From contig CM106585.1 of the NCBI GenBank assembly GCA_048013815.1, forward strand, positions 22,258,001 to 22,322,000: a stretch of DNA of 64,000 nucleotides. Reading direction: 5' to 3'. The translations under genes and the position numbers were made by a program. Positions 3,701 to 52,800 of the stretch are shown here, in pieces. Below the pieces are notes generated by a model. The model was not told where the DNA came from, did no database searches, and was given only the letters and a program-made list of their open reading frames with translations. Origin of the DNA: Setoptus koraiensis. Taxonomy: Eukaryota > Animalia > Arthropoda. How positions within the stretch are numbered: the first letter of the stretch is position 1; the number at the start of each line of letters is the position of its first letter.

Positions 3701-4584
3701 TTAATCAAGCTCGCTGTCGGGCGAGCGTCTGCAGCGCAACAGGCACGACATGTACATGATCTCAATTAATCAATTTCGTGCTCGCCGGTCGCTGGACGCG
3801 ACCGGCGTTCGGCGAGCCGCGTCCAGCGGGCAGCGCGACCGAGACAGCCCGTCTGGTCGGCCGCTCGCGCGCAGTGACCTTGTCGGCCCGCGTCACCGGC
3901 CGACGGGCGCGCCCCTTTGTTTGCTCAGCACGCGCACCGCGTGCCCACTGTTGCCGCTGAGACTGTGCGTCGTGTGCACTGCCGAGACAATGGTCATTAT
4001 CGGCCGTTGCGGACATTTTTATCGCGCCGCTCGGCGGCGCGTTCGCCGTTTCGAAGCTGGACAGTGGTCAGTGGGACGCTCTCGCCTCGACGGTGCGTCG
4101 GACGGAGCGCCGCGTTGGAGTTTGACAGCGCGCCGCGTTAGAATTCGCTGGTTTCGGCGCGGGCACGCTTCGCCTTCGGAGCCTTGCGCTCGCTGCGAAT
4201 GTGCGAACGTGCGAGTGTTCGCACGGGCGAACCTTCGAGTGCGAGCCTTCGAAGCGAACGGGCGAGTGCGAACCATCGGAGCGAGTGCGAACCTCCGAAG
4301 CGAGTGCGAACCCTCGAACGTGCGGATGTGCGAACTCGCCCTCCGCGGGAGCATGGCAATTTGCGGCCGGAGCGGCGCGGCGGCTCTGTTGTCGTTATCG
4401 CTGCTAGTGCCATTACCATCATTATTATGATTGTTGCCATTATTATTAGCAGCAACTGGTGTTGGCGCGCCAACGAGCAAGTGCAACAATGCTCACACCA
4501 CTGACCCAACCACCAATAACAATGGCCGTCGTCGACGGCCGGCACGGCACGGCCACTTGCGCCGGCTCGCCGCTGGGTCCAGTT

Positions 4585-36307: not shown

Positions 36308-36808
36308 TGTCACTTTAGAGGACTTTTGATAACATGGTGTGGGCCATTTGTTTTGTCTTATGGAGATTTCCTTTCGATTGGTAGTGATAAGTTTGAGATG
36401 AAGACGAGTCACGTGACGTTCAAATGGATAGTATTTGTCAAGATCAAGCACACGAGACCGTCGTGAATCACGATTTCCAGGATTAGTCATCATCAAACAG
36501 ATGATAGATGATAACTAGTAATTGTTGGTCAAGGGTAAATGCTAGGGATTTTGGCGGTTTTTAATTGATCGTGATTGATATTTGGTGGTAGTGGCAGATT
36601 CGTGTCAGTTCACACATAGGTCAAAAGTTTGAAGTGATGTCGAGACACGCGACATTGTTGAGAAGGGTTATATTCATCTGGAACACTCAATCTCGAGCAC
36701 AATAACAATTTGCAGGACAATTTTGGTGCAAAAGCTGGCACAGAAAGTATATAAGAAGTGTCAGTGCTCCGAGCTTGATCATTGAGATTACTATTTGGGT
36801 CGATCACC

Positions 36809-38302
36809 ATGGCCAAGATGTATGCCAAGTTTTTATTGATATTTCAATATATCCTTATCCTTGGCTGTCATCACATGGTTAGATGCGGCCTAATTGACGA
36901 CTATCAACTAATAAAACAGTATGCCGACACTAGCAATGATCATCTCGCTCAAGCTAACACTCAGGACTTAATTACTAAAGCGGGATTCAAGTATGAGATT
37001 CACTACGCCACCAGCACAGACGGTTACGTTTTACAATTGATAAGACTAATCAACCCATTAGTTGACCGTAAAAATTTGAGATATCTACCTGTTTTAGTTC
37101 ATCATGGTCAGACATTGTGTTCGGCGACTTTTGTGCAACAGTCGAATAATAGACACTTTCCCATGCCATATCCCCCTGTAACAGCTAACGCCTCAAATCA
37201 CTCGACAAGCGAGCGCTATCCCAATCCTCATCATCAAGGCCATTACGTTAAGATGTCATCAAAAGAGTTTAGAATATCACATCGCGTCGACAATAGCTCA
37301 CTGGGCGGGCATAGATCAAGTAAGCGGGCCCTTGCTCTAGCTTTAAGCAATGAAGGCCACGATGTTTGGTTGTTAAGCTCTAGAGGTGTGGATGCCAACA
37401 CGAGAATAGTGGACCGTGGAAAGCCGCAAAAAATACAGATTAACAAATATTGGTCATTCGGTCAAGACGAACAAGCGCTGAAAGATCTACCTTCACAAAT
37501 CGACAAGGTTCTGGAGATAACCAGAAGGAAGAAACTCAATTACATTGGATATTCACAAAGTACCACAATCATGTTTGCCTTGTTATCTTGGCGCCCGGAA
37601 ACTGCCAACAAGGTACACACTTTCGTCGCTATATCCCCCATTGTCTTCATGGACCACATCAAAGGTTTACTTCAGCCACCATTCCACTTGATAGCGCCGA
37701 TGGTACCAAAAATAAACTTTCCACTCCTTGGTCCCGACTTCATCGCCGATACCCTAAGATTTGCACTTTTAGCTTTCTGTGGCGACCCTACAATTAGGTA
37801 CACAGTTTGCTCGTCAGGTTTAAACTTGTTTTTGGGTTATAGTCCTTTTATGCAGACAAATCTGGAACTACCAATACTGGGTCATCTTTTGCAACTCTCC
37901 AGTTTGAACTCACTTTTGCAATTGGCACAATTCTCCTACAAGGGTAAGTTCACAAGATATGACTATATGAATGAGGAGGATAATTTGAGAGCTTACAACA
38001 TGACCCAGCCGCCAGAATATGATCTTTCTAGGATAAAGTGCCCGTCGATCGCAATCATATCCGGCGCCAACGATTACTTAAGTACCCCAGAGGATGTGAC
38101 TCGACTAAAAAAAAGTTTACCAATCAAGCCAGTTCTCGATTTGGAAGTGCCCGACTATAATCATCTTGATTTATCGGCAGCACGAGATATAGACATCCAG
38201 GTAAATCAGCCTATTTTAGACCTTCTCAATAAAGTTGACCAAGCTTACAAACCTGATGGAAAGATTGTCAGAGTACGACGACACCCAGTTTTTGTTTATT
38301 AG
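36809..38302 (+). CDS. Secreted acid lipase family (LIPA/gastric lipase/lipase-3-like) alpha/beta hydrolase, intronless
   Basis: Hydrophobic N-terminus from ATG 36809. STDGYVLQLIR (abhydro-lipase region), HHG, GHDVWL.SSRG, YWSF..DE.A..DLP..ID, nucleophile IGYSQS, lid Cys pair FCGDPTIRYTVC, catalytic D (GANDYLS) and H (YNHLD). Confidence 0.93.
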   Translation: MAKMYAKFLLIFQYILILGCHHMVRCGLIDDYQLIKQYADTSNDHLAQANTQDLITKAGFKYEIHYATSTDGYVLQLIRLINPLVDRKNLRYLPVLVHHGQTLCSATFVQQSNNRHFPMPYPPVTANASNHSTSERYPNPHHQGHYVKMSSKEFRISHRVDNSSLGGHRSSKRALALALSNEGHDVWLLSSRGVDANTRIVDRGKPQKIQINKYWSFGQDEQALKDLPSQIDKVLEITRRKKLNYIGYSQSTTIMFALLSWRPETANKVHTFVAISPIVFMDHIKGLLQPPFHLIAPMVPKINFPLLGPDFIADTLRFALLAFCGDPTIRYTVCSSGLNLFLGYSPFMQTNLELPILGHLLQLSSLNSLLQLAQFSYKGKFTRYDYMNEEDNLRAYNMTQPPEYDLSRIKCPSIAIISGANDYLSTPEDVTRLKKSLPIKPVLDLEVPDYNHLDLSAARDIDIQVNQPILDLLNKVDQAYKPDGKIVRVRRHPVFVY

Positions 38303-45974: not shown

Positions 45975-46483
45975 TTTGCATCAGAGGATGAATGGGGCAA
46001 TATGATGAGAAAACTTTTAGAAATGAGCATGATATGGTGGTATGGTGCGTTGTTTATTGGCACATAAACACAGAGAAGAGGCACCAAAATAAACCGTTGG
46101 CCTCACTGAGAAGGCTAGCATCGTGCTCCGTGGGCCCCAATGCGCATGAGTGGACACGAAATTACCGTTGGCGGGAAAATAAGTCACAAGTTGAGCTGCT
46201 CAACTTGAGCTGTAACGAAAAATATCTTATACAACAATTTATATATCTTATTCTATATCTTATACGATATAAGCTGCGCGAAGCTGATATACCAACGGAG
46301 AAAATAACAGTGATGTAAAGTAACGGTGGGCGCAAGTAAGTAGAATAGAAACAGCGTTATCGTTTTCGCAACTGTCACAAATAGACAGTTGCTATCATTT
46401 TAATTGTATAAGCATTAAGTATTACATCACATGACACAAAACATACGATAGCCAATATGGTAGTGGCTAATGAGTAAGAAACT

Positions 46484-46489
46484 TTTATT
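46484..46489 (-). promoter_or_regulatory. Polyadenylation signal of the C2-domain gene
   Basis: AATAAA on the minus strand ~40 nt after the TAA at 46529..46531. Confidence 0.6.
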
Positions 46490-46528
46490 GTTACATACAA
46501 TACAAAGTGGCGCATTTATAGATGACGC

Positions 46529-48016
46529 TTAGTTCTTCTTCTTGTCCTTGTCGTCGTGCTTTTCTGGCTTGAATTCGACTTTCAATTTAAGATAGTGCTT
46601 GGGGTATTTGCGACCTGTTGTTGGGCCATGGTTTAAATACATAGTTAGTTAGTCGTTTGGTACAAAAGCCGTGGGTTTAGCATTGTTGTGTAAATATGGG
46701 CCAAAGTATTAACTATGGCAAAATTTACTGTCTAGCTATCGGCGAGGCTTGCTCTGACACCCTGGACGCTGGCATGTTCAGGCGATGCAATAATCGCCTC
46801 TCATCGCCACTAGTACATTGCGATGCTTGTTGGAATGACAATAACCGAACATTGAGGCAACACAATCTGAGGTGGATCGGATGAGTCGATTGAGAGCGGG
46901 CGCCTCAACCGCCACCGGTTCGGCTAGTCAACAATGACACCCACTCGTGCGGTAACTGGCTCGCTCTATCATATTGTGGATGTGTCAGGCTGCGTTACTC
47001 ACCTTCGATGGCAAACATCTCCTTTCTGTTAATCTTGTCATTTAAGATTAAGTCTGTAATCTTCACTCTGGTTATGCCCACATCATCCGGCTTGTTCGGC
47101 TTGTCCGAGTCAAACAGCTCAAAACGGAGTACGGTGTCGGCAGAGATGGGCTTCGGCGTGCGACATTCCTTGTTGAACTGTTGCGTTGTGAATTGTTTGT
47201 TTGTTTGTTCGCGTGATTCGAGTTGATTGGCCGGGGAGTTGGGAGATGTTTGGAATGGTGAATGTTAGTATGATTGTTGTTGGATGGTGTTAGACAATAG
47301 ATTAACCCATTTGTGGCGATTAAATGTCGGATCTGTCTCACACAATTCGCGCTGTGAGACGAATCACGATAATTGGAAGCAAGAGGTTCGATAGTTCGAC
47401 AGGTGCCGAAATCGGCAATGAGAAGGCAACAAAAATGATGGTTGCAAGAATAGAATCTACAGAAACAGCGCCCACAGGTGACTGGTGAAGAGCTCAGTCT
47501 TAAGTGGTTATTGTTTACATGGTACGCAATGGCTTCATTGGCTCATTGTGGGGTGTCCCCGTCGGTTGCCGGGCCCAATCTGGACACTGTGATAGATGCG
47601 AGCATGACAGGTAAAAAGTATCACGGTGTCGGTTGTGTGTGTGTAAGCGGTGGCTCACGATTGCTCACGAGTGGCGACGTGAGAGATCTCGCATCGCAGC
47701 CAGCGCCTGACGCGAGGCGCCTAGTGGCCGAAATAAGCCACCAACAAAATCACCTAGTCTGATGATGGATACATGCGATCATGATGCTGGCACGAGAGAT
47801 CGATCGACACACCGGCACAAAAGAACACTCGTCCCATTATGAGTATATCATCATCATCATCAGCAACAGCAACAACAGGTAAGTGCCCCCAGTTTGCCTG
47901 TTGTTTGGTGCGTCCAGTTTCATAACTCCGCTTACGTCTCTATTAGAACAAGTTGGAATCTGCATTTGAATAGCCGGGCATTAGAGCAAACAGACATGTG
48001 TAGCCGTATGTAAACA

Positions 48017-48048
<32 letters not shown>

Positions 48049-49853
48049 CTGCTGTTGTTGTTGCTGTTGTTGTTGCTGCTGCATCGGGCGCCGAACGAGC
48101 GATGATTAGATTAGAATTGGTGCTGCCCTTGCTCTTGATCAAACCACGACCATGCTCATCATCACTGGCTGCCTGTCAGCCAACAGGTGAGCGCCAGTCT
48201 ATTTGCGCGCTTGATTAATTGTTCCTCTTGTCTCTGGTCGCAGTGTAGTTTACATGCGCACATAGCCATACATGATATAACATGTTGTGCGCTGGCTGGT
48301 GTTCGAATTGCTTGCTTCGAATCGGCTCAAACCGATTCGAAGCGAACCTTCGCAGCGAATTATTGCAGCCAACGAGAAAAGAGGGAGGCATTCTTGTGAG
48401 TGTGTGCGCCGGCCACAACTAGAAACCGCACTGTCGGCACAACCGACACAACGCTGTGGGTAACGAACACAACAAGTGAAGAGGAATTATTAATTGTGAA
48501 CCATAAATCAACTTGATTGCGTTCGTTGCTTGTTGTTGCTGTTGTCTAATCAATTTCAATTTGAGTCATGTTTCGTCGTTGGCTGGTTCGTTGGTCCGTT
48601 CGTATCATCATGGCACAATAGTGGCCTGGCTGGCTCGCCCTGTCAGACGGGCAGCAAAGGCGCACAAAAGCAATGGCCAGCAGTCAGACAATGATTGAGA
48701 TGTTGTTGAGGATATTGGTGCTGACGCATCATCATCGTGCGCGCATTTAGTTATGATAATAATAGTAATAATACTGATAATCTGCAAGCCAGAGAACAGC
48801 TTCGAAACAACAGCTCCCAACAGCGCGCTTGCTCGATACATTACAAGCGCACATCTCAATTACTTGTCTCTCTTTGGCTCTCGCCTCGTTTCTTTTTCTC
48901 CCTCTCTCTTTATTCGTTGGCTCGCTCTATTCGAATCGTTGTTCGGGGTTCGCTACTTTCGCGTTGTTCGCCTGTTTTGCCGTTCAGTTGCTGCTCGGTT
49001 GCCGCCACAAACGCGCATCATGATCAAAACACTTTTGCTGCTCTTACTTGTTGGTCTCATTTTGCCCGCTCTCCCGTTTTGGTCTCACTGTGCCGGCGAT
49101 GCTTCCAAATCGCTAAAAAACTATGATTTTTCAGCTTCACCTCCGCTGCTGCCAGTTGATTTCGCTTCGGCTTGATTTGATATCGATCAACCGCTGCTCG
49201 ATAATTGTGGCACAGGTACAGGTGGGCACCCGTTGCGCGCGAGCGCGCACATTGATGCGATTCTCAATATTGAAAAAGAATATTCCAATAGAAGAATCAA
49301 CATCAACATGCTGTGTCCGACACAATTCAACGGTCACTGCATGTCCGCCTGTTCGTTTGTCTGCGACAAGTCGTGCTCAAATTGGACTCTCAATCTGGAC
49401 AAACGTGAACCCAGTGATACGCACACCTCAACAACAGCAGACTAAACAAACTCACTCGGTTGTTTCAGTTATTGTTGTTTTCACTATTATAAATACTATT
49501 ATAAATACTGTTATTCGCTGTTCGGTGGTTCGGGGAAACATTGGCACCACTGACAACATTGGGATCAGATATATTAGATTGTAATGTGCACTCACCTGTG
49601 GATTGTTTGTGTCTTGCACTATGTTGGTCTCACAAATTAATTCTTTAGTTTCGTTCAAGTACAGCTTGACGAACACGTCCGAGTCTTGCTGAAACGGAGC
49701 GGGATCCAAATCGGGCACGTGCGCCTCGATAATCTTCACTTCGGCAAATCCCAGTGTTCTGATGAGTTCGTCGCGACTCAAATCGCCGGCCATAATTGCC
49801 ACGGGCAAGGCCAGGCCGACGATCAGCATCAGCATGATGGTTTTGTTTGACAT
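46529..49853 (-). CDS. Signal peptide + single C2-domain protein; complement(join(46529..46614,47003..47177,49596..49853)), 172 aa
   Basis: Exon 1 MSNKTIMLMLIVGLALPVAIMAG...VKIIEAHVPDLD...SDVFVKL...DTNNPQ|GTGAGT (phase 0). Exon 2 caacag|FNKEC...LRFELFDSDKPNKPDDVG...IEG|GTGAGT (phase 1). Exon 3 caacag|RKYPKHYLKLKVEFKPEKHDDKDKKKN*. Phases match, the C2 motif is continuous across junctions, and AATAAA follows at 46484..46489. Confidence 0.88.
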
Positions 49854-52800
49854 TGTTTCGGCTGACAAATGAAAATATATTGTTGTTGATTGTTGAATAA
49901 CAAGTGGAATATTTGACGAAAACAAGTTAATTTGTTTAATACTGTGTAATATTGTGACCAGTTGTAACTTATCTGGTGACGGATTGTGTTGTGGTTGTGG
50001 TGCAATCGTCGACTGCGTTGCTTGATTTTATAGTTTTCAATTAATCGATTGCGACAACCGATAATCACTGGGTCACAATAGGTCATTTATTGGCGGATAT
50101 GTGGCGATTGTTGTCGCGATACGTGAGTTACGTAGCATAACATCGGTATCAGTGACAGTTGCGCTAGCGAGAGAGACAAAGCGCAGGAAACTATTCCATT
50201 TGTTCTGTTTGATTTGGCAACAACGTTACGTATCTAGCGAGCTAGTCTCTGGGTGCCTCAACGGCAACAACAAATCGACGGCAACAACAAACCGACGGCA
50301 ACCACAAACCGACGGCAACCACAAACCGACAGTTACAACTTGCAGCAACAAATCAACAGCAACTGGCTGTCGTCGTCCAATTGGTCGTTGATTGGCCCAT
50401 TGATTACGATTGCTATTGTTGATATTGGTTATCGACTCATTGTTTACTTACCGAAAGTACTCACTGACCGATATGTGCTTCTCGTTGGATCTTACAACTT
50501 GTTAGGGAGGCTGCTTGCACTATTGTGTGTCTATTTTGGTTGGGTTAATTTTATACCACAAATTATTACGACAATTCATAGGACCATTCATGCGACGACC
50601 ATAATAGTAATATAATAATAATATCGGCTGTTGTGTTGCCAACAGCGCACTTGCCGGCGCACAACTGCGCCGGCAAGTGCGCCGGCGATAACCATCTCGA
50701 TCATAATTATAATTGACTTTTTTTATTTTTACCATAATGCTAATAACATTCACTCATACGATTATGTAACGATAATGTAATAATACGTCGAAAAAAACTA
50801 AGACGACGACGACGACGACTTTGTTTACCGAGCTCACATGATAAGCAACTGGCAGCTTATAAAGTTTTATATGTTATATTATTATTGTATTAGCAAGTAG
50901 CTAATGGCAAGTGCATGTACATATGATATCTCGAGCCAAGATATTGCCGAGCATTATAAGCGGTTGTGGCGAGCAACTTTGCGACTGTGATTGCGAGACG
51001 CAACATTAGTCAGAATGGGTAATGGGTAATTCGCTGTCTATCGCCAGAGGAAAGGCACAGAAAAAAGAAGACAACAACAACATTAATAAGTTGAAATAGT
51101 AATAATTAAATGCGACTTTCAGCGGCATGCGGCTGTCGTCGCGTCCAACCAACAACAATCGTTTGTTTTATTTCGTACTTTTATCATAAGCCCAAGCAAC
51201 AATTATCGTCTGGCGCACTGGCACGCCAATGCGAACTGGCTGAATGCAGTGCTGATTTGTATCGAAATTGTAGCTGTTACTAGATACCTCGTCATCGTGT
51301 CATAAATGTTGTTGTCTGTTTGTCCATCTTAATTACTTCTAGACTAGTTAATCAGATAACGCGCTCCATCACGGTGATGCTAATTAGATATGGCTGACAA
51401 CGATGCTGATCGCTTGGAAGCCGTGAAGCGCCATAGCAAACATGTCACTCAAGCTGATTGGTAGCAGGTGTAATGGTGGTCTGGTTGTCTGGTTGTCGTC
51501 GTCGTCGCGCTCGTCACATTGAACGCAACCCTTTTCCAATCTTGCAACTTTTCTCACAATATCTCCCTCTCTCGCTCCACATGTCGAGTCTCAATTCTTT
51601 TTGCTCTCTCCCTTCGTTTGGCAGTCCGTTTGGCGTGTCCGGCTGGCCGCTGCCAAACTGACAGCTTTTCAACGAGCCGTTGGCGAGCACAAGTGGCTAG
51701 TTATAGATTGAATTAGATTAGATATCCATGTCGGCCTTTTCACGGTGTCTCTCGCTCTCTCGCTCGGTTAGCCTATGGGCGAGCGTATCGGCGAGCTGAA
51801 TTGTGTGACCAATCAACTCATATCGCACATCTCGCCGTCACAAATCTCGGCACACTCAAATATAGACACATCAATGGATACTGGGCGATGCAGACGCGGA
51901 TACGGCAGCCACTAATTTGGCCACACCAACTGAATAATCTGACAAGCAAATCAAGTGTGTGAAAAAGCCCAAATAAAAAGCTTCCAGAATGAACAGTCTC
52001 GGCGACCATAACCGGCCGGCCGACCGGCTCACTGTATCCGTATCAAATGAGATTGCTTTGTCAGATCATTGGAGCGATATAATTGTTGTTGTAATTTGAT
52101 TTTGTTGCTGCCAGATAGTGCACTTGTGACCACGCTTGTGCCAATTGTATCATACTCTGTCAGCCGGTTGCAATAAACGTATGCTTGAATGAAGAGTTTA
52201 AAGTAAAGTTGTTAAGTGGCTGTCACTGTTTCATACTCGCAAATAGACACTCTCATTATGAGAGTCTCATACTCTCAGAGATAGACATCTTTTTGGCAAT
52301 CTATTCAGCTACCGAATAGGACAATAATTGCCACTGCTACTGGCTCATTGAAACGTAGATTTGAATTTGTTTTTTGTGTGGCATGATTGCCAGCTAAACA
52401 GGTCGTGCTCTTATCGCTTGTTGCCCAGCGATTGGCCGATATATTCCGGCAATAAAGCGACAAAACATAGAGATGGCGGAATAAAGAAACACCGAGATAG
52501 AAACAGTGGATCAGTTCAATCTGTGTATGCCGTTTGTCTATCTGGCGTTTCATCGACATTCATTCACGAAACGATACTGCCATTCAATCAGCGTATCGGA
52601 TCAGTGCATTTGATCGGGCGACAACTCTGGTCAGTGTGCCCATTCATTATTCAGGTTCGAATCGCATCTGTAAGATCTATGGCAAGATGGTTAAGACGGC
52701 AGCGATTGGAGATTTTTGCGGAATCTCCAACCGTTTTGCAAACAAGCGATTAAACACTGACAACACTCCCTAGGTTACCTTGTGAGAATGTTCATCGGAT

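Follow-up and report, generated by a model that had tools for sequence, protein, structure and literature searches.

The 64,000-nucleotide (nt) window analyzed here (Setoptus koraiensis, contig CM106585.1, positions 22,258,001 to 22,322,000) carries on its minus strand a three-exon gene that is real, expressed, and conserved. Judged by its sequence and that of its relatives, the 172-amino-acid (aa) product (173 codons including the stop) is a protein of the secretory pathway that consists of a single C2 domain behind a cleavable-type leader. C2 domains are among the commonest Ca2+/lipid modules, and almost all of them act in the cytosol at micromolar Ca2+; a secreted, stand-alone C2 protein would be an unusual case, apparently not described before, of a typically cytosolic domain employed outside the cell. 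C2 domains that act extracellularly are in themselves known from perforin and the Notch ligands, where they are parts of large proteins, unlike the stand-alone product described here.

The gene had been proposed in a sequence-only reading of the window, and every element of that three-exon model was found where it had been placed, with consensus GT..AG introns (Table 1) and GGT (Gly) as the codon split by intron 2. Independent numbering likewise reproduced the proposed acidic residues (D50, D59, D109, D111, D117/118), Cys 74 and 91, the N-E-T sequon, and the lack of a KDEL: the product contains D48, D50, D59, D109, D111, D117, D118, C74, C91, and the sequon N67-E-T, and ends in ...KKKN. When public sequencing runs were compared with positions 46400-50000 of the window, run X5 yielded one 956-nt contig (depth 77) spanning 46418-46612, 47001-47177, and 49596-50000, followed by 179 nt more. 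Both of its joints have CT..AC ends, which is GT..AG on the minus strand, and the 46612/47001 joint, read with the cut two places to the right, is the 46614/47003 boundary. The introns are uncovered in X5; the DNA runs X2 and X3 cover the whole stretch. From run X1, a 209-nt contig stops at the exon-3 boundary and shows one synonymous difference, at 46562. An acceptor-like ...tttgtcag sits 8 nt 5′ of the ATG, and the sequence-only reading had itself raised the objection that a further coding exon might join there. We rejected such an exon since the one transcript contig seen runs straight through the site; among the in-frame codons upstream of the ATG at 49853, no other ATG precedes a stop. 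On the minus strand, poly(A) signals lie at 46489-46484 (AATAAA) and 46404-46399 (ATTAAA). If the 5′ untranslated region (UTR) is colinear to ~50179, the transcript also holds upstream ATGs (uATGs) at 50143, 50138, and 50086 (minus strand), the last of which opens an 85-codon open reading frame (ORF; 50086-49829) that is out of frame and overlaps the main start codon.

To identify the domain, each exon was scanned separately against the Pfam C2 profile (PF00168, curated cut-off 22 bits). Residues 38-85 of exon 1 correspond to model positions 4-48 (18 bits) and residues 1-49 of exon 2 to model positions 50-98 (15.5 bits); each match is below the cut-off alone, the two are collinear across intron 1, and their plain sum is 33.5 bits. 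Unspliced relatives pass the cut-off, namely P0020 from another organism (36.7 bits) and two paralogues from the same genome (40.6 and 42.4 bits). Up to an E-value of 10, PF00168 was the only Pfam family matched by the exons, and PF07657 was not found. For structure prediction, P0020:100-231 was folded together with the family alignment A4, in which the exon pieces of 20 orthologues form separate rows. The resulting AlphaFold model (predicted local distance difference test [pLDDT] 87.4, predicted template modeling score [pTM] 0.83) is an antiparallel β-sandwich of eight strands; a single-sequence model of an own-genome paralogue was unusable (pLDDT 34.6). Collinear profile matches over exons 1 and 2 and the canonical sandwich in the model of the relative thus bear out the claim of a single C2 and no other domain.

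Foldseek returned 210 matches of the P0020 model in the PDB at E<=1e-3, and the best 50 of the 210 are all C2 domains. VIA-align ranked plant SYT1 C2A at the top (Z 14.5), with PLC-delta1, PLC-zeta, intersectin, dysferlin C2A, cPLA2, PKC-epsilon, and perforin C2 at Z 13-14. We read the topology of the model as type II: its strands begin with one of the L-x-V-x-I type and end with one that follows the β7 turn, and the domains it matches best are those of PLC, cPLA2, and novel PKCs. The modeled fold is that of a generic C2, to which perforin is not specially close. In sequence, the family is a divergent C2: PDB searches with the P0020 C2 and with the exon-1 and exon-2 profiles gave only marginal synaptotagmin matches (E 0.08-0.6), and feature and shape searches of the ESM Atlas led to generic C2 clusters, with no stand-alone arthropod cluster among them.

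The secretion signal was judged by inspection and by comparison across 35 relatives. The window product has n-, h-, and c-regions with a small residue at –1, no other hydrophobic span, and no retention signal. In an alignment of 18 sequences, the N-terminal 22-43 residues are hydrophobic and cannot be aligned with one another; conservation sets in abruptly at the mature N-terminus, (D/E)-D-K-(I/L)-K.... Such a divergent hydrophobic leader, with a small-residue c-region and ending just before the conserved mature N-terminus, is present in 33/35 relatives, and the c-regions of orthologues at this point read A-Q-A, V-Q-G, or T-N-A. Further along, the N-x-S/T sequon in the β2-β3 loop—in C2 domains the end opposite the Ca2+ loops—is kept in 34/35 relatives, the exon-1 Cys in all 35, and the second Cys in every exon-2 sequence covering that position, including two aligned paralogues. 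This Cys pair is absent from Pfam-type cytosolic C2 matches. C74 and C91 belong to opposite arms of a single hairpin and are equidistant from its turn, making a cross-strand disulfide between them plausible. The linker of one paralogue, which is long, Thr/Asn-rich, and sequon-dense, is of a kind typical of extracellular proteins. Hence, the proposal of a secreted, stand-alone C2 protein gains from a leader, a sequon, and a Cys pair conserved over ~35 relatives; cleavage and release themselves are predictions from sequence. As a variation on the β2-β3 loop, one lineage (P0015, P0021, P0022, L005 418-774, and P0016) carries an insertion of 13-30 residues where the sequon lies elsewhere. It is Gln-rich in P0015, P0021, and P0022 and Lys/Glu-rich in P0016, and three of four versions contain an N-L-S sequon.

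The N-terminal helix might alternatively stay in place as a type II signal anchor, tethering the C2 domain to a membrane on its lumenal or outer side. We regard this as rather improbable: the 18-residue core of the window species, its weakly polar c-region, and the Ile at –3 would suit an anchor, but orthologues combine shorter cores with classical c-regions (A-x-A, V-x-G, T-N-A) directly before the mature N-terminus, and the helix-breaking P17 and A22 of the window product fit a cleavage site. Far less probable still is a synaptotagmin-like topology, with the helix as an anchor and the C2 domain in the cytosol, the alternative that the sequence-only reading had itself named. Most C2 domains are cytosolic, and the ...KKKN C-terminus would suit a KKXX motif on that side of the membrane; however, this tail is missing from the orthologues. 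The hydrophobic core is preceded by positive and followed by net negative charge, which predicts that the C-terminal part is translocated, and the orthologue leaders, the conserved sequon and Cys pair, and the paralogue with a mucin-like glycosylated linker also speak against cytosolic residence. Synaptotagmin-type proteins have an uncleaved anchor and usually tandem, cytosolic C2 domains; the window product has a single C2, and its sequence features point to a lumenal or extracellular site.

In alignment A1 (18 sequences), the invariant positions include G35, V46, P47, D48, D50, P51, P53, Q55, S58, and D59 and further C74, E75, Q80, D81, and P85. Every sequence aligned in the corresponding region retains the motif D-S-D-K-P and an acidic residue further on. 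In alignments to Ca2+-binding C2A domains, D59 falls on the aspartate of S-D-P-(Y/F)-V and D109/D111 on the D-x-D/E pair, with D117 six residues further along, matching synaptotagmin. A clean alignment is thus obtained for four of the five positions that hold Asp in a classical site (D59, D109, D111, and D117), and these stand among the Ca2+ ligands proposed earlier; the fifth, D50, is ambiguous, with P53 aligned in its stead. D50 could fit as the first ligand if loop 1 has a three-residue insertion after its L-D-P motif, a motif also found in PKC. On these alignments, the C2 domain would probably bind phospholipids in a Ca2+-dependent manner.

The same loops leave room for a different function, in which the secreted C2 is a Ca2+-independent protein-binding module—a ligand or decoy—that competes with the Cys-rich-plus-C2 paralogues for the same target. 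Many C2 domains mediate protein interactions (e.g., Munc13 C2A), several of them are among the structural matches, and the C2 of Delta-type Notch ligands is functional without Ca2+ sites (PMC5538765). Moreover, loop 1 is remodeled around the invariant P51, P53, and Q55, and the two paralogues share the C2 and add another domain to it. Across the family, however, loops 1 and 3 hold six acidic positions that vary little or not at all, which would be unexpected if Ca2+ were irrelevant, and we consider this function unlikely.

An exhaustive phmmer search with exon 1 over 1.84 billion representatives gave 20 matches (13 at E<=1e-10), and a word-indexed search with P0006 added ~20 relatives. Each of the ~35 relatives, all from other genomes, was called on a genomic contig in prokaryote fashion, with the ORF running from exon 1 into the intron, and 32/35 of these read-through ORFs go on with 'VS', that is, with a GTGAGT or GTAAGT donor. 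The position of intron 1 is kept in five loci (L005, L010-L013), where GTGAGT or GTAAGT follows ...PK and a second coding block begins directly after an AG; exon 2 of the window gene is 59-61% identical to four of the five. These loci have exons 2 and 3 fused, and the orthologues stop at ...FKPEK, the tail beyond this point being confined to the window species. Comparison with these loci therefore marks intron 1 as old and intron 2 and the Lys/Asp tail as local novelties. Nei-Gojobori ratios of nonsynonymous to synonymous substitution rates (dN/dS) among four orthologues range from 0.025 to 0.095 where dS is unsaturated, arguing that the gene is conserved under strong selective constraint.

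Neither the exon-1 search nor the word-indexed searches found a named NCBI or UniRef relative, and the word-indexed matches were all unnamed Logan, ENA, or JGI calls. Rab2, used as a control, confirmed that annotated proteins of insects and vertebrates are represented in the same collection. The genes neighboring the orthologous loci were likewise without named close relatives, and the family may therefore reside in poorly annotated lineages. A literature search for secreted stand-alone C2 proteins and for Salp15 combined with C2 produced nothing relevant, its 'C2' matches concerning adenylate cyclase, fibrinogen, or Ig C2 domains. A well-characterized family into which the gene would fall—another objection that the sequence-only reading had anticipated—thus turned up neither as a named NCBI/UniRef relative nor in a paper.

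In five other genomes (L005, L010-L013), the orthologous gene adjoins LSM and KTI12 genes. The arrangement differs in the window, in which the gene has an RGS gene and a divergently transcribed semaphorin gene as neighbors. Genomic context also bears on the suggestion, made from proximity, that the C2 protein is a partner of a secreted lipase encoded 8.2 kb away (ORF 36782-38302, plus strand), which it might serve as a cofactor (a colipase-like membrane adaptor). Some lipases do use β-sandwich domains for lipid docking; beyond that, nearness is all that favors the pairing. Three unrelated genes (mahjong-like, Rab2, and RGS) intervene, and no lipase lies within 6-10 kb of the orthologues in the five other genomes, where LSM and KTI12 are found instead. 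We consider the partnership extremely improbable and rejected it on synteny.

A family profile search revealed two further members on another contig of the same genome (Table 1). Paralogue 1 consists of a signal peptide, a 6-Cys domain, and the C2 domain matched at 40.6 bits, which has the same loop-1 signature and Cys pair as the window gene. Paralogue 2 has a signal peptide, the same Cys-rich domain, the long mucin-like linker mentioned above, and a C-terminal C2 (42.4 bits), again with this signature and Cys pair; its exact sequence is not present in a collection of 15 billion proteins. Compared with Pfam Salp15 (cut-off 27.8 bits), the Cys-rich domain gives two independent matches, both sub-threshold, with 20.4 bits over model positions 68-107 in paralogue 1 and 18.7 bits over positions 3-106 of 111 in paralogue 2, so we take the likeness to Salp15 as a lead and claim no membership. 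P0020 shows the same architecture of signal peptide, Cys-rich domain, and C2 in another organism. As predicted from these sequences, the family places a secreted C2 either alone or C-terminal to another secreted domain, the latter being formally the same arrangement as in perforin.

Perforin had been named as the best-known extracellular C2 case, a fair choice to which the Notch ligands Jagged and Delta can be added, since they also carry extracellular lipid-binding C2 domains; that of Jagged binds Ca2+ in its loops (PMC5538765). The C-terminal C2 of perforin (PDB 4Y1S/4Y1T) passes through the secretory pathway, acts outside the cytosol, and uses loop aspartates to bind Ca2+ for membrane docking, and it superimposes on the family model with Z 13.2 and a root-mean-square deviation of 2.6 over 117 residues. 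A dozen cytosolic C2 domains are, however, at least as close (Z 13-14.5), and the PDB searches with the P0020 C2 and the two exon profiles gave no sequence-level match to perforin. The window product is a C2 alone, without MACPF or EGF domains: 172 aa leave no room for a MACPF domain upstream, Pfam finds only C2, and the transcript contig holds no further coding exon. The nearest language-model clusters for P0020 are 'perforin-1-like' C2 proteins (0.83), which we treat as a lead only. The N-terminal C2 of Notch ligands (MNNL) is likewise extracellular, disulfide-containing, and phospholipid-binding, but it belongs to PF07657, sits at the tip of a large transmembrane ligand, and has DSL and EGF modules after it; the window exons match PF00168 only, and the product has no further domains.

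Among small proteins made essentially of one Ca2+-binding C2, Arabidopsis CAR4, rice OsGAP1, and Trichomonas proteins match the model at Z 13.3-14.1; these lack a signal peptide and act in the cytosol. The best matches in both sequence and structure are C2A domains of synaptotagmins and extended synaptotagmins (plant SYT1 C2A, 22-24% identity), with which the family has the ligand motifs S-D-x-(F/Y)-V and D-x-D ... D in common. Both kinds of synaptotagmin are anchored in a membrane and carry tandem C2 or SMP domains in the cytosol, whereas the window product has a cleavable-type leader, a single C2, a longer loop 1 with invariant prolines, and the conserved Cys pair and sequon.

Intron 1 contains a CAA/CAG-type microsatellite block (47839-48090) that draws many unrelated high-depth contigs in the DNA runs, and, compared with the window, run X2 has 11 nt inserted after 48992. 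A 140-codon ORF with a signal-peptide-like stretch lies on the plus strand inside this intron (48753-49175); it has no coverage in the RNA-like run X5 and is probably a chance ORF.

Table 1 Coordinates of the C2 gene in the window and of its two paralogues
Feature	Position	Strand	Details
5′ UTR (minimum extent)	49854..50000	-	X5 contig unbroken over 49596-50000, extends 179 nt past 50000
Signal peptide (predicted), residues 1-22	49788..49853	-	K4 in n-region; 18-residue hydrophobic core with P17; A-I-M-A, then G23
Coding exon 1, 86 codons, phase 0	49596..49853	-	ATG at 49853; donor CAG/GTGAGT
Exon 1 content	49596..49853	-	Leader, short conserved N-terminal segment, first C2 half: loop 1 (D48, D50, D59), N67-E-T, C74
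Intron 1, 2418 nt, phase 0, GT..AG	47178..49595	-	Contig joint 47177/49596; position kept in other species
Coding exon 2, 175 nt	47003..47177	-	After ...caacag; donor AAG/GTGAGT
Exon 2 content	47003..47177	-	Second C2 half: C91, loop 3 (D109-S-D111-K-P ... D117)
Intron 2, 388 nt, phase 1, GT..AG	46615..47002	-	Contig joint 46612/47001; missing from five orthologous loci examined
Coding exon 3	46529..46614	-	After ...aacag; last C2 β-strand, Lys/Asp-rich tail, TAA stop
3′ UTR (transcript-covered)	46418..46528	-	X5 contig starts 46418, X1 contig starts 46411
Paralogue 1	L002 964-1908 (G000:C2:20996633-20997577)	+	Exons 964-1160 and 1341-1908, GTAAGT..CAG intron
Paralogue 2	L014 2724-3983 (G000:C2:16784223-16785482)	-	One ORF, ~420 aa, Met at 3983

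Taken together, we think it fairly likely that the gene encodes a cleaved, glycosylated, and disulfide-bonded secreted C2 protein that binds membranes with Ca2+. The 22-residue leader would direct the product into the endoplasmic reticulum and then be removed, leaving 150 residues that amount essentially to one C2 β-sandwich of type II topology, flanked by a short conserved segment at the N-terminal end and by a charged tail. In the secretory pathway, N67 would be N-glycosylated, on the loop opposite the Ca2+-binding end, and C74 and C91 would form a disulfide between neighboring strands. Outside the cell or in a lumenal compartment, at millimolar Ca2+, D48/D50, D59, D109, D111, and D117 of loops 1 and 3 would bind Ca2+, which would bridge to anionic phospholipid head groups, and the partly hydrophobic tip of loop 1 (A/L-P-F/M) may aid membrane contact. 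As it has no effector domain, the protein would coat or tag exposed membranes or the surfaces of lipoproteins, or act there as a competitor, possibly sharing a pathway with the two longer paralogues that carry a Cys-rich domain before the same kind of C2.

Several observations weigh against this picture. The leader of the window species is long (18 hydrophobic residues), has Ile at –3, and may not be cleaved. Loop 1 is ~3 residues longer than in synaptotagmin or PKC, with a pLDDT of only ~61 there, and HMMER aligned the invariant P53, rather than D50 or any Asp, to the first synaptotagmin ligand. In addition, the modeled protein is a relative at 40-50% identity to the window product, and RNA support consists of one contig in one run of unrecorded library type and a probable second.

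At the level of the family, we tentatively suggest—as a possibility, and a less likely one than the mechanism for the single protein—that the window gene belongs, as its stand-alone member, to a family of extracellular C2 proteins of arthropods that has not been described before and that would sense or tag exposed anionic lipid in a Ca2+-dependent manner. Such lipid might be presented by dying cells, microbes, or lipoprotein particles, for example, in body fluid or secretions. The family would be marked by the D-x-D-P-x-P-x-Q-x-x-S-D loop, the conserved disulfide, and the glycan, with other members fusing the C2 to a Salp15-like domain, and it would have escaped protein annotation because automatic callers run exon 1 into the intron. 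Since every database relative found is such a truncated exon-1 read-through, the family is invisible to routine protein searches. If the proposed mechanism is true, the gene encodes a minimal natural extracellular membrane binder, conserved and strongly constrained, that consists of nothing but a C2 domain. With so simple a system, one could then ask how a C2 domain adapts to millimolar Ca2+ and what is conveyed by lipid signals exposed in the body fluids or secretions of arthropods.

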